From assembly GCF_964204645.1 (NCBI RefSeq), contig NC_134030.1:4940778-5004777 (forward strand): a stretch of 64,000 nt of DNA. The letters are read 5' to 3'. Under the pieces are notes generated by a model, which made no database searches, was not told the origin of the DNA, and saw only the letters and a program-made list of their open reading frames with translations. This DNA comes from Tubulanus polymorphus. Lineage: Eukaryota; Animalia; Nemertea. This document shows, in pieces, positions 38,951 to 48,420 of the stretch; within the stretch, counting starts at the first letter, position 1; the number at the start of each line of letters is the position of its first letter. The position numbers were made by a program, and so were the translations under genes.

Positions 38951-41900
38951 ATGAAGAGATCTATAGAGAGCGGTGATGAACTAGAGCACATGGTTGTGAA
39001 AGAACCGAGGTTGAATATCACCGATGCAGAAGTTGAAGGGTTAACAGTCGTTTCCGAAAAAGACATCGATGAACAGCAGTTAGTATTTTCTATTTTCATT
39101 GATATACCAGGGTCCCTACGACTAACTCCCTTTTAAACAGAAAATGCTTTTAAATGTGCTTGAAACTCCTTTAATTTGAACAAAATGCCCAAAACTCCTT
39201 CAATTTTAGAAAAAGGCGATCGGAAATTTTGTCTAGATTGTAGTCAGTAAACTACACCTAAAAAACGATTTGGGACCTGGATTTTTTCTTTAATGAATCA
39301 CGCAGTTACCGAATTAGAAACTGAGTTTTAGTTGTGTAAAAAATGAAAATTTGCTTTGTAAATTGTAGAGTATTTGTTACGGCTGATGGCGACCACGGAA
39401 ATATATTCGTTACCGATGATTTAACGGTTCAGGAACCGACGATCGTCCAAGATTTAACGATTGTAGAAGAGGAAAATGATGATGATGACGACGACGATGA
39501 CATGGCGTCGATTCACCGGTCAGCGCTTGATCAGTTCGAGCTGCAGGATTCCGCTCATACCGTACAGAATATCGTCGTTCAACACATGGACATCGCTGAA
39601 CCCCTGACCGTATTGAGAAAACTACTAGAATCTAAATTACAATGCAGTTTGAAGGGACATGATTTCTACCTTCAAGATCAAATTCTTGTAAGTCATTTTC
39701 AGTTTGTTCTGATATTGTAAGGTGTGCTGTCAGTTTGAGCGATTAAGCAACGCGTATTTGAAATAATATGTAAAATACTGTGTAGAAAGTTCACTGATCC
39801 AAATCTTAAAAAGTGAAAAAAATGATTTTAGAATTGACCCGGATGTTTCGGGTTGCATTTTATTACAATTTGTTTTATTTACTTTTTATCGAAAAAGACT
39901 TTTCTTGATTATTATCATAATTTCTAAGATGCACAAATGGACAAAGCAATATTACCAACATTACATCTAGCATGGGCTTTGATTTAGGTGTTGTTAATAG
40001 TGTTTGAATCGAAATGAAATTCATGTAAAGTGAAAATTATTTAAGCCTACAATGCCAGTCTTTGGACCAATGTAAAACATTGGGCTTAAAAGTTGGTAAA
40101 TTAGTTCTCTGAAAAATGTTGGCATCAAGTGAGCAGTGGCATAAAAAAAGAATGGCGTTATAATGGACATAGATCGTATTTACTTTTGATATAATTTCAG
40201 TTGGATCCAAAGAAGAATCTAGTTGAACAATGTGTCCAGGGTGAGGGAACTGTACAGATCAACGTGGAAATTAAATCTCAACCAGGCATTAAACCGATGA
40301 TCAACATTGTCGATATACTAAAACAGACTGAAGAAATCATTGAAACCACAGTTGAACCAGAACGTAAGTTACACTAGTATATGTCGCTAAGTTGAGCAAA
40401 TGAAAACCCTGAATATAATGTAAAATCTAAAATTTGGAGTCTGGAATATTTATAATAAGCTAGTACACATAGTTTATATCAACATTTCGAATCTATGATT
40501 ATCCTTATAGTCATCTTCAGTCAAGATGTTGGAATTGACTACAAACTCAAGGAAACATTGTGGACTGTTCTTTTTCAATTTTTCGTTGTGGGATTTTATA
40601 TTATTTTCACAACCCAGACAGAGTGTTTCATTCCTGAATATTGTTGGTAAACATTGTAGTTTCCTATCATTTTAGCCGAGCCAACTCCACCTTCTAAAGT
40701 TGTGATACCATTTCATGAAAGTTCTGAACACGTGACACGATGGATCGTCGACCAAAACTTCCGCAAAGAACAAGAACGACTTAAAATACCTCTCGGTTAG
40801 TAAAAATCACTGAACACAATATGAAAATGACTTGAAAAGGGCCCTATTTGATTTCTTTCACTTCTCTATTGCAGACCCGTCGCAATGGAATATAAGTCAT
40901 GTGAAACACTGGTTACAGTGGGCGGTTAAAGAGTTTAATTTGACAAATGTCGATGTACACGGATTCAATATGACTGGACGTCAACTGTGCGATCTGAAAC
41001 ACGACCAGTTCACCAGTTATATCCCCAGCGATCGTAATGACATCTTCTGGACACATTTAGAACTATTGCGAAAGTGTAAATTTGTCGGTGAGTGTTTATC
41101 AAATTAGTTGTCTCCAGTCAGGATCGAGTCAAAAATGTTTTTGAAAACGTTTCTAATAAGTCTGAATTCAGATCTGCTACTAAAATCTCCTAATTGCTGT
41201 GTGATTTCTGTTTTAGCCGTAGTTCAACAGCCGACTCCTCATGCCATAACAACGGTCACTGTTTCAACATCTGGCAATGATTACGCACCTGTTGGTAAAT
41301 ATTCTGACTTCGTCAATCAATCTAAAATTGTTAAGAATCTTTCTTTGAAATGCATTTTAAATCTTTCTTTTAATTCTTTACAGCCGCAAAAATTGGCAAA
41401 CCTAAATATAAAAGTCGGCCACCGCGAATATCAGATGATCGAACTTTGCCTGGCAACAGGACCGGTGAGTAACACATTAAAACTGTTAACTGTTTATAGC
41501 GATCAGGTCCAGCATTAGTTCCTGAGTTCCAGTATCACAGCAACACAGAAGGGTCCTTCCCTGGAAAATGTAGGAAATTTGCTGCCTCCTAATACAATGT
41601 TGAGCATTTTTGGGCGACATCTAATTAAATTTCCCACATAAGAATCCTATTAGATTTTGAATTTTACCTTCGTTCATCGCTCATGCAGTAATGGTCATCA
41701 GATGGATCCATCTGTGATGATGTTTATTACGTTAAATGACAAAATTGTTTCATTCTTTTAAGGAAATAATGGGCAGATTCAGTTGTGGCAGTTTCTGTTG
41801 GAATTGCTGACTGATAAGGAATGTCGTGAGGTGATTCACTGGGTTGGTGATGAGGGCGAGTTCAAACTGAATCACCCGGAGCTCGTTGCTCAGATGTGGG

Positions 41901-42429
41901 GCTCGAGGAAAAATAAACCGAATATGACGTACGAGAAATTAAGCCGCGCCCTCCGGTATTATTATGACGGAGATATGATCGCTAAGGTGAGTTTTAATAA
42001 ACAGCTCCAGGGTCGACACTTACCTGTAAATTGGGGGGTTTCCATCTATATTTGACATATTTGACTTTCTTAATTGATTAGATTGTTATAGGGGAACCGA
42101 CTTACATTTCAGGGAATAACCGGTCAGGGAAAAGCAAATCAGATAGAAGTGACCACCTCAGATCTTTTTCCTAGGATTAGAATTGACAATCATTTCCATT
42201 ATCGATTAGCCTTTGAATAGTAATACTGAGTTTGTTTTGGTTATTTCAGGTTCATGGAAAACGTTTTGTGTATCAGTTTATCTGCGATCTGCGTATGTTG
42301 CTAGGATACACGGCAGCCGAGTTGAATCGACTCGTATCGGAAAGTTCGGAGCGGTTTATGAATAAAGTTCGTGTGGCGTTCTCTCCCGGAGCGTCGGGTA
42401 GCGGCACGACTAAAATCATCATGAAATGA
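38951..42429 (+). CDS. GABPA: GA-binding protein alpha chain (ETS factor, ELG/Ets97D class), 9 coding exons, 501 aa
   Basis: Exons 38951-39078, 39369-39687, 40201-40363, 40676-40795, 40875-41087, 41217-41294, 41384-41464, 41763-41986, 42250-42429 join in frame (1506 nt). OST domain ([15 protein letters not shown]...[16 protein letters not shown]), PNT domain ([21 protein letters not shown]...[10 protein letters not shown]), [23 protein letters not shown] domain, and the GABP-beta-contact tail [19 protein letters not shown]. Confidence 0.96.
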
Positions 42430-44200: not shown

Positions 44201-47200
44201 TCATAAGCCATCTTTAGGAGGTGGAACAAGCTGTATTTCCTCAGCCACCGGTGCCTCCTGTTGACTGAGTAAATACATCGTTAGGTCGACCCCCAAATCT
44301 GATAATTTTGACAGAAATTCCATCTTTGCTTCATTCTCCATTTTTTCACATTCTGAAAATGACATACATATATATATAAGTGTAAACTATAGGAGTGTTA
44401 TGCTAGTATATTAATCCAGAGTACAACACTTACTAAGATTGAATTCTTGTTGGATATCTAGTCTTTTAATGAGTTCTGTATTTTCACTGAGACGAATCTC
44501 ATCCTGGTGGCTTTGTTTCATTAATTGCAGTGATTGGTCGTGTGCCTGACGACTTTTCTCAATATCTTGTTCTACAACAATAAATGTTCTAAATTGTCCA
44601 ACGAGCATTGAGAATGAAGCAGAGATTGTTCACACTGCCAGCCAATGACATTCAATTGCATAATATCAAACAGTACACAAGAAGGATCAGTTACAAGATA
44701 ACTCGTGACAATGTTCGTTCACAGAACAGACGAACCACGAGATATCTTGAGACATTTGAAAACATACTTGCTGTAGTTCGCGCTTGCTCGCGATTCGTTT
44801 TAAAATCTTTCACTTTCAATTCTTGTTCCTGAATTTCTGCGTTTAATCTCAACTGCGTACGCGATTGGACAGCTCGATCTTGCATCGCCTTAAAAATAAA
44901 ATCATCGATCTTACACTAATCATGCCCATGTAATTTTTAAAGGTTTTTGACGTGGATCTTGTAATGAAAGTGGGTGATTCTAAATGTATAGTTTAAAGAA
45001 TGGAGTATATGCTGCAAGAGTTGAATTCGGAGCAGGAACCGACAGATTTTTTTTAGAATAGAAGCCTGTAGATGGGTGTTAAAGCATTTTTAGGTAGAAC
45101 TGACGCATCATGCAGTTTTCACCATATTCAGCGCAATGTAAAGGGGAATTCCACATCCTGGATTCATTTCAACATTTGAGAGTTAGGGTTAACTCTTGAG
45201 TTATAATTAGTTCACTTTCAATGGATTACAAGTCACATCTGAACACAGAACCATGAAACTAGAGATCCTGGAATCGTCCTGTGATCCGTGAAATGATAAC
45301 CAACGACATTATGTACATACCTGTAACTGGTCGCTGGAATGGTAACCAGTGTAGACAACTTTATTGATGTCGAACCCAATTCGTTCACATCTTTGTAACA
45401 GTTGCGGGAATGTTTCTAATTGGCTGAATTTGGACGTATTCTTGAGGAAATCTTGGAAGCTAAGTTTGCCAACAACAGCCACAACATCAGCACAAACAGC
45501 GCTATCAAAATAAACACAAGTCAATTAGGGAATCTGAATATCTTAAACCCACTACTTTGTTACATGGCATTTTTTTCCTGTCTGGTTTGGTTTGCAAATT
45601 TGCAACGTTCTGATTTAAGATTTTCAACTTAAGATTTTTCATCCATGAAAATGACCAGAAACCACAGTACTAACATGTCAACAAATGTTTTGTGGTTCAA
45701 CCAGAAAGGCAGTTTAGGTCAAACTGGTTGATGGTTAAGACCCATATGTAGAAGGAATAGCAATTGCTTTTACTCACTTGATCATGTCTGCTATTGGATC
45801 ATGAGTTGCTTCTAACTAAAAACAAAATGATAGTCGATCATTTTGTAATCAAATAAATATTCACAATGTGGTTAATAGCACTAAAACGTTCAGATATCAG
45901 TACAGAGAATTATGATGTCGAAACATGGGATAAATAGATTTATAGCTGAAAGAAAAACTTTTCAGACTTTATCTTTCTTTCGTGGGATTCTCTATGGTCA
46001 CAACACGGAATAGTGTTTCATCAACTGGTTCAGATATAAATATGTGTTAATTATGAGCAAGGAGAATCAATACTCCGTAGTTACCATTTTAATGATGTCT
46101 TTCATTTCGTAAAATAACATCAGTTTTACTGTAATCATAGTATCATCCACTGTTCGAACATCGCGCACCTTTCATAAAGAAAAAAAAATACAAAAAGAAA
46201 TTCTAGGTAGATATTCTGAAGTATATACTAGGGGCGGATTTAAGGGGTGGTCTCGGACCGCTGTCTTTTACGGTACTTTTCGTCAAGACAGAGATAGTTA
46301 AAACCTGCCAATTTGACACTGATCTCTCAGAATTTGCATCCTTAAGGGTGTATTTCTTCAAAAATATCGAACCCTAATAGAGGCACCCGCTAGTGGCCTT
46401 CCTTCTGGACCCCATCCTTCCAATCTTTCTAGATCCGCCCCAGATATACTTATTACTAGTAATTGAATTCTACGGCATAGTTATAGTTTTTCATACGGTC
46501 AGTAGTTTCTGAATTAGTTGAACATTCGAATTCCCTTACATCATAATAGAAGTTTTCAGGAATGGTAGTAAGTTTCTGAAATGTCCGACTGCCGGGAATC
46601 ATTCTAGATTTCATTGCTGGATCGGCGCCATGCCACTGAAATTCATGCAGCCTACAAAACAAGAGGAAACAAGTCGATCTTTAAAGCAACACTGAAAGCA
46701 TCATTAACAGCTCAGTGCATAGTGGAATATTCACATCAACATTTCTACTTTTTTCACTCCTAAAAAACCTGGATTTCTATCAAAATCTTCAAATTATGAA
46801 TATTCTTAACATCGAATTTTGTGAGAAACTTTAGCCTTGGCTTTAACAATGGCAAAACAGAGCTTGGTCACCGTGATGACTATAAAATCAAGTTTGAAAA
46901 AAATGAGCCTAAATTAAGAGGAACTCAAATGATGTTTGTATTCAAGCATTTATGCTCCTTGATGTAAAACTGAAGAGAATATTCTGCAGAAAAGCGCATC
47001 AAAATTTCCTAATTTTAAACTTTAAAAAAACTTTCTCACAGGAATTATACAACTTTTAGAATATTCACAATTTTCACATCCACTGATTACTTCGATCTAA
47101 CGAGGACATTGGAATAAATGATCTACTGGTGATTACCATTCTTCAGCTGTAGGAATGAAGACAGTTGGTCCTTGTACAATACGACGTTCTACGTTATCTT

Positions 47201-48420
47201 TCACTTTTTTGTAAACGACGATCAAATGATTGGCGTCGATTTTTGTAGCGTCTTGCACGATAATATAGTCATACGCCAAAGGGTTTTCATAAAGATCACA
47301 AGGGCTGAAAAAAAATAAACACACACAAAACATGATCGTTGAACTAAGATCAAAACGCAAAAATATGTTTAACCATTTCAGTGCGTCTACACATAAATCA
47401 GTGATAGATTTCGCTAGTACACCGCACTGCGGTGTATTGATGTAATTAGTAATTATCTGTCTTGAAAAATGGCAGCACCTGTCAAACGTAGCGAAATACT
47501 AGTAACTAACAATACACTGCGCAGTTGTATAGATGCACTATAGTGGTATTACCTTTATTCAAAACACTAGGGTGGAATTTTTTAAAATTTTCAAATTATC
47601 TCCAGCACTATAGGGTATTAATTAGTCGGCACTGAAAGGGTTAAACCAGAACCATTAACTAACTCCAGTTAAGGTCACTTTCCTGCTATGTGGCACTAGA
47701 GAGTTACTGATTACAGCGATGAGATGCAAGATTCAACAATTTTCACATTTTTCGCATAGCCATTTGATCCTTTCTTCAGATTTCTTCACAAAATAGGATA
47801 TTTTACATTTCTTCGTACCAAAAAGAGGATTTTCACATTTTTCCATACCAAAAACAGAGTTTTTCAAAGCTTTTTTCAAAAGGGATATATACCCGAAACC
47901 ATTTCTTCATTTTTGAGGAGGTTTTATGGAAGAATTGCATAAGAAGTTAAACATGTTATAGACAATGCAACAATTTCAGCCTGTAATTAGGGTATACAAA
48001 TCGTCACATAGGCTAATTTCCTAAATTTTCACATTTTTCAGATGCATCTCAACCCTTAAGGATAGCTTAACTGCAGCCGTTTCGATAATGTACATTAAAT
48101 TTTCCGAAGTTTTACCCGGGTAAGTGAGACAAGACGCCATCTTTATTCTTGATAACCATATACTGGTCAGGAGTACACGTGTGCCTTCGTAATTTCACTA
48201 GACGTTGCCGAAACAGAAAAATCTGCGCAATAAGAGAAAACGCCGTTCTAATTGATTATCTAAATAAGCGTCACTGCGTGCAAGAGTAATCATATATAAT
48301 AATTATGTTCAGTTGCTCCTAAATCAACTTTACCCGGTGTGGGCCTTTGATAAGGCGTCCTTCACCGAGGTGATTAAATACTAATGCTTGTTCCCCTTGA
48401 AGGATTCTTTTGAATTTCAT
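44201..48420 (-). CDS. Short major-vault-protein-like / SPFH (band 7) domain coiled-coil protein, 10 coding exons, 395 aa
   Basis: Exons 48420-48334, 48222-48116, 47304-47137, 46651-46540, 46168-46085, 45815-45778, 45501-45321, 44888-44768, 44571-44434, 44352-44201 join in frame (1188 nt). Three N-terminal beta repeats end in GP (RLIKGP, SHLPGP, RRIVQGPTVFIP), followed by a shoulder/SPFH-like segment PENFYYDVRDVRTVDDTMITVKL...DPIADMINAVCADV and a Q/E/K coiled coil. The gene model is strong; the MVP kinship is inferred. Confidence 0.8.
46229..46443. mobile_element. MITE (hAT-like TIR) in intron
   Basis: TAGGGGCGGATTT...AGATCCGCCCCAG. Confidence 0.65.
47373..47640. mobile_element. piggyBac-like MITE (TTAA TSD)
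   Basis: TTAA|CCATTTCAGTGC...GCACTGAAAGGG|TTAA; near-identical inverted copy at 62420-62688. Confidence 0.9.

Follow-up and report, generated by a model that had tools for sequence, protein, structure and literature searches.

A 64,000-nucleotide stretch of the genome of the nemertean Tubulanus polymorphus (NCBI RefSeq GCF_964204645.1, contig NC_134030.1, positions 4,940,778 to 5,004,777 of the forward strand; hereafter the window) carries, on its minus strand at window positions 48420..44201, a gene of 10 coding exons whose product is predicted to fold as a miniature of the vault protein MVP, with three vault-type repeats, an SPFH shoulder and a long, cap-like helix. The exons join in frame across introns that all run GT...AG, and together they give a coding sequence of 1188 nt, that is, 395 residues and one terminal stop. 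The gene model is confirmed by its identity to the RefSeq entry 'uncharacterized protein LOC141906945 [Tubulanus polymorphus]' (P0210; 100% identity, 395/395 residues). Residue 1 of the window protein pairs with residue 1 of its orthologues in the alignment, and the Aplysia protein aligns with it end to end (1–390 versus 1–391, 48% identity). The locus is an intact, conserved gene of Tubulanus polymorphus. A pseudogene or annotation artefact is rejected on the grounds of the intact and conserved reading frame, a fragment of a longer MVP gene on the grounds that full-length relatives in many phyla begin and end at the same places, and a membrane protein on the grounds that there is no anchor.

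MVP is a protein of ~850–900 residues with nine repeats and an SPFH-like shoulder, and a first-pass annotation of the window had proposed that the gene encodes a stand-alone relative of half that size. For the full-length fold we used an AlphaFold2 model of the Aplysia orthologue (30-sequence alignment, mean predicted local distance difference test score, pLDDT, of 87), in which ~20 β strands extend to residue 181 and are followed by an α/β domain to residue 255 and by a single helix of ~109 residues (257–365). Foldseek comparison of this model with the PDB returned twelve MVP entries first (E 2.6e-14 to 9e-11), with erlin, stomatin, flotillin, HflK/C, prohibitin and QmcA at 5.5e-8 or weaker. 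In VIA-align, residues 1–376 of the model superpose onto human MVP 321–770 (Z 16.8, 356 residues aligned), a span that, by the rat and human domain boundaries, comprises repeats R7–R9, the shoulder and most of the cap helix; here the cap-helix-like helix (exon 8) pairs with MVP 647–770. For the SPFH core, superposition on mouse stomatin's SPFH domain covers 109/109 residues at 1.8 Å (Z 13.2). The N-terminal region was modelled from the window protein's own residues 1–136, folded alone with a 46-sequence alignment (pLDDT 92.8). Its best 16 Foldseek matches are all MVP, including R1–R7 crystal structures (TMq 0.52–0.68), and everything beyond these 16 has E>0.5 and TM<0.25. VIA-align over 48,161 chains likewise places MVP in the top three positions, at Z 8.2 (131 residues aligned, 3.5 Å), Z 6.0 and Z 4.3 (the last a two-repeat nuclear magnetic resonance fragment), whereas the remaining chains, flotillin 1–43 and stomatin 52–96 among them, span one repeat only. 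Because these non-MVP chains cover a single repeat, one repeat can be read as an SPFH1-type β unit and three in tandem as a vault wall.

The protein contains only three GP dipeptides (at 26, 65 and 110); each is placed by the models inside a ~40-residue unit of five β strands, and each is near-invariant across 153 relatives. The vault-repeat fold, understood as tandem five-strand antiparallel β units, is thus predicted to be present, and the modelled layout is one of vault-type repeats at ~1–40, 41–83 and 84–133, an SPFH shoulder at ~139–256, a helix of ~110 residues and a short conserved tail. At the level of fold this layout matches R7–R9, shoulder and cap helix of MVP on a small scale, with MVP as the closest structural relative of the predicted protein. 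We found no transmembrane segment, hairpin, hydrophobic N-terminus or Gly2 in the window protein that could serve as a membrane anchor; the only peak in the hydropathy scan (1.61, residues 194–212) is a buried SPFH helix modelled with pLDDT ~97. The features that the first-pass annotation had read from the letters, namely an intact ten-exon open reading frame, three β repeats of ~40 residues with GP, a helical SPFH-like middle, a long helix and an LGVDL tail, are all present together with the motifs it quoted, and neither a signal peptide nor a transmembrane helix emerges from the hydropathy scan, as it had said. Its central proposal of a stand-alone, half-size MVP relative is supported at fold level: the isolated N-terminal repeats do superpose on vault repeats, the middle domain is SPFH-like in both profile and structure, and MVP ranks before flotillin and the other SPFH cages. 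The distribution of these elements over the exons is given in Table 1.

Table 1. Coding exons of LOC141906945 and other features nearby, in window positions.
Feature	Position	Strand	Residues	Content
Exon 1	48334..48420	-	1-29	Start codon at 48420; first part of β repeat 1
Exon 2	48116..48222	-	30-65	End of repeat 1, most of repeat 2 to the G of the second GP; G58 and G65 conserved in the family conservation table
Exon 3	47137..47304	-	65-121	P66 and close of repeat 2; repeat 3, which carries the third GP (110-111) and the E120-W121 motif
Exon 4	46540..46651	-	121-158	Top conserved family motif, basic loop 130-152, start of SPFH domain
Exon 5	46085..46168	-	159-186	SPFH β strands; near-invariant V162-R163-T164 and D166-D167
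Exon 6	45778..45815	-	187-199	Start of SPFH helix with T190, D192, P193, D196
Exon 7	45321..45501	-	199-259	SPFH helices and last strand, then start of long helix
Exon 8	44768..44888	-	260-300	Cap-helix-like single helix
Exon 9	44434..44571	-	300-346	Cap-helix-like helix, continued
Exon 10	44201..44352	-	346-395	End of helix, conserved LGVDLT.YL motif, short tail; stop at 44203-44201
Intron 2 repeat	47790-47866			30-bp unit x2.5 (80% matches)
Intron 4 stretch	46224-46448			225 bp flanked by 19-nt inverted repeats, 79% complementary
Neighbouring gene	~38500-42055	+		GABPA-like ETS factor; ETS and pointed-domain open reading frame pieces visible

By its sequence the window protein classes as a marginal Band_7/SPFH-clan member and not as an MVP-family member. 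The sole Pfam family above cut-off is Band_7 (PF01145; 29.5 bits against 23.6, residues 87–282). Among 30 relatives, 15 match Band_7 (E<=1), three give a faint Vault_3 match and two a faint MVP_shoulder match, and a 610-residue family member passes Vault_3 at the position of repeat 3 (30.3 versus 28.8 bits). Exon-by-exon Pfam and PDB sequence searches yielded only chance pentatricopeptide (PPR) repeats, and NCBIfam and PADLOC hold no family for the window protein or its bacterial relatives, which therefore are not a catalogued defence component. The first-pass annotation had also asked whether full-length MVP is encoded elsewhere in this genome: a six-frame Pfam search locates a canonical MVP gene on another contig (G000:C2, ~31.081–31.086 Mb), and the same genome-wide search with MVP_shoulder and Vault did not recover the window gene. 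DUF4062 also scores above its Pfam cut-off in this genome, at G000:C2:19813164-19813259, C4:4900227-4900454 and C10:12029240-12029434; we take DUF4062 to be a TIR-like NADase domain as in TEP1, and the three genes to be TEP1-like candidates of unconfirmed orthology.

Profile comparison does detect MVP. In hhalign, the 153-sequence family profile aligned over 63 columns with that exon of the animal's own MVP gene which runs from the end of R9 through the keyhole loop into the first part of the shoulder (score 40.4, probability 83–89%, E 2.5e-6 to 8.8e-6), against 13.1 +/- 2.7 with a maximum of 19.5 for 100 shuffles of that exon, and it paired exon 3 with the 'VVFGP...EE' stretch of MVP repeat 9. 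The other two MVP shoulder exons gave a weak in-register signal (E 0.013–0.024) or none, the second shoulder exon being weakly in register with exon 6. In the ESM Atlas the window protein is present letter for letter in a 463-member cluster. The nearest clusters hold proteins of 326–870 residues from rotifers, haptophytes, diatoms, Chloroflexota and phages; several carry Band_7, MVP_shoulder and Vault_3, and short MVP-like clusters of 416–641 residues with MVP_shoulder/Vault_3 are among these neighbours.

The extent of the family was established with exon 7 (60 residues) as query against 1.84 billion representatives, which gave 238 clusters at E<=1e-3. Many of the matches are proteins of 390–460 residues in which the matched segment sits at about residues 200–260, as in the window protein, and these align with it end to end. 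Among animals, the named members belong to molluscs, nemerteans, an annelid, crinoids, hemichordates, sponges and rotifers; others stem from a choanoflagellate, Rhodelphis and marine protist transcriptomes. The family also occurs in bacteria of the Planctomycetota–Verrucomicrobiota–Chlamydiota (PVC) type. For many orthologues the whole open reading frame lies on an assembled contig of 1.3–1.7 kb, presumably a spliced transcript. The match lists suggest, with no dedicated search made, that vertebrates, arthropods and nematodes do not have the family. The sources call its members 'uncharacterized', 'hypothetical' or 'Band 7 domain-containing'; the few other names are clear mis-annotations. The first-pass statement that no characterised animal protein has this layout stands insofar as the family is unnamed in all sources; its layout is not unique to this animal.

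A second copy lies on another contig of the same genome (G000:C9:6083637-6090222, plus strand; the exons located exclude the first), shares at least its four clearest exon junctions with the window gene and keeps a C-terminal H.H motif. In a quick maximum-likelihood tree with Shimodaira–Hasegawa-like approximate likelihood ratio (SH-aLRT) support, midpoint-rooted for drawing only, two animal clades emerge: clade A (support 100) includes the window protein, and clade B (97) includes the second copy, beside the second Lineus protein. Sponges occur in both clades, and the duplication therefore predates the animal radiation. All bacterial members group together (support 98), with protist sequences around them. 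The H.H motif is found in clade B, protists and bacteria and was lost in clade A, the exon 10 tail of the window protein included. The most conserved stretch of the family comprises E120, W121, H123, F125, W127, H128 and G129. The window protein keeps ~60 of the residues that are near-invariant among the 153 relatives. The family is a conserved and unnamed one of eukaryotes and bacteria, of which animals hold two old paralogues. Some members carry an N-terminal MshEN domain (P0084, 662 residues, and, in the ESM Atlas, 125 Planctomycetota proteins of 587 residues that form one cluster). MshEN is a c-di-GMP-binding module, and it probably accounts for the name 'type II secretion system protein E N-terminal domain' of several mollusc clade-B proteins; the fusion hints at nucleotide-second-messenger control.

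The bacterial members lie in NAD/ADP-ribose operons. A 412-residue member, 40% identical to the window protein, sits on an 88.8 kb metagenomic contig within a packed row of same-strand genes that reads, upstream and up to the family gene, NAPRTase, Macro, NAD synthase, PnuC, AAA_28, NAD kinase, methyltransferase, NrtR-type Nudix regulator, isochorismatase and NADAR, and downstream of it DUF4291, Tpt1/KptA, Nudix, ADP-ribosylglycohydrolase, phosphatase and ADP-ribosylglycohydrolase. With a search that began from a single bacterial member, we compared the loci of 20 bacterial relatives from Verrucomicrobiota, Planctomycetota, Omnitrophota and Sericytochromatia. NrtR is a same-strand neighbour in 15/20 loci; isochorismatase/nicotinamidase, usually directly upstream, in 14/20; NAPRTase in 13/20; a Nudix hydrolase, usually directly downstream, in 12/20; ADP-ribosylglycohydrolase in 11/20; and NAD synthase in half of them (10/20). 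Several of the loci that do not show these neighbours are on short contigs. In Haloferula rosea KCTC 22201 (L039:3988-14286), direct Pfam annotation gives NAPRTase, NAD synthase, NUDIX, NrtR, isochorismatase, the family gene, two successive ADP-ribosylglycohydrolases, Macro and Tpt1, with stop and start codons overlapping on both sides of the family gene, which is probably translationally coupled with its neighbours. An operon with the mini-MVP gene mid-row thus unites genes of NAD salvage and of ADP-ribose processing in four bacterial phyla (loci L021, L023-L042). No Vault-repeat match above cut-off was found in the five bacterial genomes searched that carry the family, and the family therefore works without MVP.

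This context is of interest in view of recent cryo-EM work in which NAD+, ADP and ADP-ribose were found bound to MVP where the SPFH domains of adjacent subunits meet, behind a basic 'keyhole loop', through R504, K506, R507, P508, H509, R511, L517, D521, F522 and other residues (PMC12280208). Native brain vaults have further been reported to contain ADP-ribose, and TEP1 to be an NADase (bioRxiv 10.64898/2026.05.01.722283). In the hhalign register, P132, P140 and P152 of the family fall on MVP P505, P508 and P520, E/D153 on D521 and F155 on F522. The family loop 130–152, into which the highly conserved stretch from E120 to G129 leads, is basic and punctuated by prolines and has, relative to the MVP keyhole loop, a 5-residue insertion. 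Its conserved K/R positions are 135, 137, 138, 147 and 149, and in the 15 bacterial sequences three of them (138, 147 and 149) do not vary.

On these data we propose, with a probability of roughly 60%, that the window gene encodes a soluble SPFH-clan protein that assembles into a ring or dome with a three-repeat wall, that probably has its paralogue as partner and that may, more tentatively, hold an NAD+/ADP-ribose pocket. To our knowledge, all SPFH-clan members whose quaternary structure has been solved (MVP, flotillin, stomatin, erlin, prohibitin, HflK/C and QmcA) form a closed ring or dome. Subunits of the present protein would accordingly be expected to pack laterally, with contacts between SPFH domains and with their helices bundled in a parallel barrel, and so to close a ring or dome that has a short wall of three repeats and lacks a membrane anchor. 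In animals this ring probably joins the clade A protein with its equally old clade B paralogue in one hetero-oligomer, as the pairs flotillin-1/2, PHB1/2, erlin-1/2 and HflK/C suggest by analogy. Between repeat 3 and the SPFH domain, the conserved basic loop may line an inter-subunit pocket for NAD+ or ADP-ribose, like the MVP keyhole loop, in which case the cage would buffer or organise NAD/ADP-ribose turnover.

Several observations weigh against this proposal. Pfam Vault, Vault_3, Vault_4 and MVP_shoulder (PF11978) do not match the window protein or its exons, tblastn of the window model against the MVP locus of the same genome finds no similarity, and a HMMER search of PDB chains with the family profile returns only a chance kinetochore match. 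The full-length fold is that of an orthologue of 48% identity and not of the window protein. The pocket mapping comes from one profile–sequence alignment with a 5-residue insertion and leaves W545, R437 and K573 of MVP outside it. The operon evidence is bacterial and may not carry over to animals. Seven protist-like members (P0035, P0041, P0116, P0129, P0270, P0273 and P0113) start with MGC.., MG.CC or MGSS.S, which are myristoylation/palmitoylation-type N-termini, so that some lineages may tether the cage to membranes like flotillins. Finally, the window protein alone has C45 (exon 2; A in 151/153) and T250 (exon 7; R in 149/153), on account of which this copy may have changed function; the two residues could reflect a lineage-specific functional change, a polymorphism or an assembly error.

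The acylation-type N-termini of these protist members, together with Band_7 as the one Pfam family above cut-off, would fit an ordinary flotillin/stomatin-type scaffold of membrane microdomains, membrane-bound and with no NAD role, in which the N-terminal units are an extended SPFH1. One repeat (residues 40–84) does also fit flotillin 1–43 and stomatin 52–96 (Z ~4), and vaults themselves were recently reported on membranes in situ (PMC13100048). We nevertheless consider this unlikely: neither a transmembrane segment nor a hairpin nor an acylation motif occurs in the animal and bacterial members, the N-terminus with all three repeats fits only MVP, MVP leads any membrane SPFH protein by six orders of magnitude in the full-length Foldseek comparison, and the bacterial context is metabolic, not membrane-related. 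The residues peculiar to the window protein bear on a different possibility, that this copy is drifting or neofunctionalised and has left the ancestral role to its clade-B paralogue. Besides C45 and T250, its L283, M51 and F224 are also rare in the family, and the terminal H.H motif has been lost from the whole of clade A. Against this, all splice sites and the reading frame are intact, the ~60 other near-invariant residues are kept, the branch length is ordinary (0.51 against a median of 0.56) and the model of the N-terminal domain is very confident, all of which makes such drift improbable in our judgement.

The canonical MVP gene in the same genome, the DUF4062-domain genes as TEP1-like candidates of unconfirmed identity, and a shoulder and cap-helix geometry common to MVP would suit an accessory subunit that co-assembles with MVP, for instance to cap or modify vaults, and that forms no particle of its own. 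Co-assembly with true MVP had been among the suggestions of the first-pass annotation and is now unlikely, because bacterial members of the family occur without any MVP, as the five genomes searched illustrate. The family moreover owns a conserved paralogue pair, its identity to MVP lies below BLAST detection, and a three-repeat wall cannot fill a nine-repeat stave, and we regard an accessory role as the least probable of the explanations considered here.

With MVP (PDB 4V60, 9BW5 and 9R86) the protein has in common, in the same order, β repeats, an SPFH shoulder, a long cap helix and a short C-terminal motif, and neither has a membrane anchor; whether the whole chain or the repeats by themselves are compared, MVP is the closest structural match, and the two agree at profile level at the junction of R9, keyhole loop and shoulder. 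It differs from MVP in having three repeats instead of nine, 395 residues instead of ~860 (850–900 in MVP at large) and a helix of ~109 residues (~30 turns) instead of ~155 (42 turns in the cap helix), in the missing Pfam Vault/MVP_shoulder match, and in being a separate gene that coexists with canonical MVP in one genome. MVP builds a 78-mer shell of D39 symmetry that contains vault RNA, TEP1 and PARP4; the present protein is without repeats 3–5, the part of MVP that served as the construct for binding the PARP4 MINT domain (PMC12280208). MVP homologues with fewer repeats have been published before: Naegleria gruberi has short MVP-like proteins of 530–559 residues (PMC3595041), Asgard archaea have homologues with five repeats (PMC12962969), and further homologues occur in phages and bacteria (bioRxiv 10.1101/2023.11.10.566534 and 10.1101/872010). 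These represent reduced-repeat forms of the same plan of repeats, shoulder and cap helix, and short MVP-like proteins are ESM Atlas neighbours of the window protein; they pass the MVP_shoulder model, whereas the present family does not, and the present family is shorter, with three repeats, and has two paralogues in animals. The membrane SPFH cages (stomatin, flotillin-1/2, prohibitin-1/2, erlin-1/2, HflK/C and QmcA) share the SPFH fold (Z 12–13) followed by a long helix, and the paralogue pair recalls flotillin-1/2, PHB1/2, erlin-1/2 and HflK/C. Unlike these cages, the window protein has no transmembrane segment or hairpin and bears two extra N-terminal β repeats, and their Foldseek E-values are ~10^6 weaker than those of MVP. 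Full-text literature searches found no published description of the three-repeat family, of the animal paralogue pair or of the NAD-operon context.

Some features of the window lie outside the coding sequence (Table 1). The stretch in intron 4 that is bounded by inverted repeats may be a small insertion of the type of a miniature inverted-repeat transposable element. Further similar 'TTTTCACATTTTTC' motifs occur near the tandem repeat in intron 2. The GABPA-like ETS gene and the mini-MVP gene are convergent, tail to tail, with a gap of ~2 kb to the stop codon at 44201.

The function of vaults has been an open question since 1986. In 2025–2026 the MVP shoulder was shown to bind NAD+/ADP-ribose, and the family described here keeps only the part of MVP that holds this pocket: shoulder and cap helix together with the last repeats. 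Its bacterial members, free of MVP and belonging to an NrtR-type regulon in which nicotinamidase lies on one side of them and ADP-ribose hydrolases on the other, give an independent genomic tie of vault-type SPFH cages to NAD/ADP-ribose metabolism and offer a small, genetically tractable model. Taken further, the family may be a 'mini-vault' cut down to the minimum and independent of MVP, in the form of a soluble ring or dome with inter-subunit NAD+/ADP-ribose pockets. Its ancestral role, of which the bacterial NAD-salvage/ADP-ribose-hydrolase operons would still bear the trace, would be to sequester or channel these nucleotides, so that the MVP pocket and the NAD-consuming vault residents PARP4 and TEP1 would all reflect an original function of the vault cage; we put this forward as a tentative and, on present evidence, rather doubtful extension. 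If true, it would make vault function testable in the culturable Haloferula rosea and Adhaeretor mobilis and in invertebrates that have both systems. Structurally the family stands between vaults and the membrane SPFH cages and fills the gap that separated them, and many marine invertebrate gene sets gain an unannotated and ancient paralogue pair.

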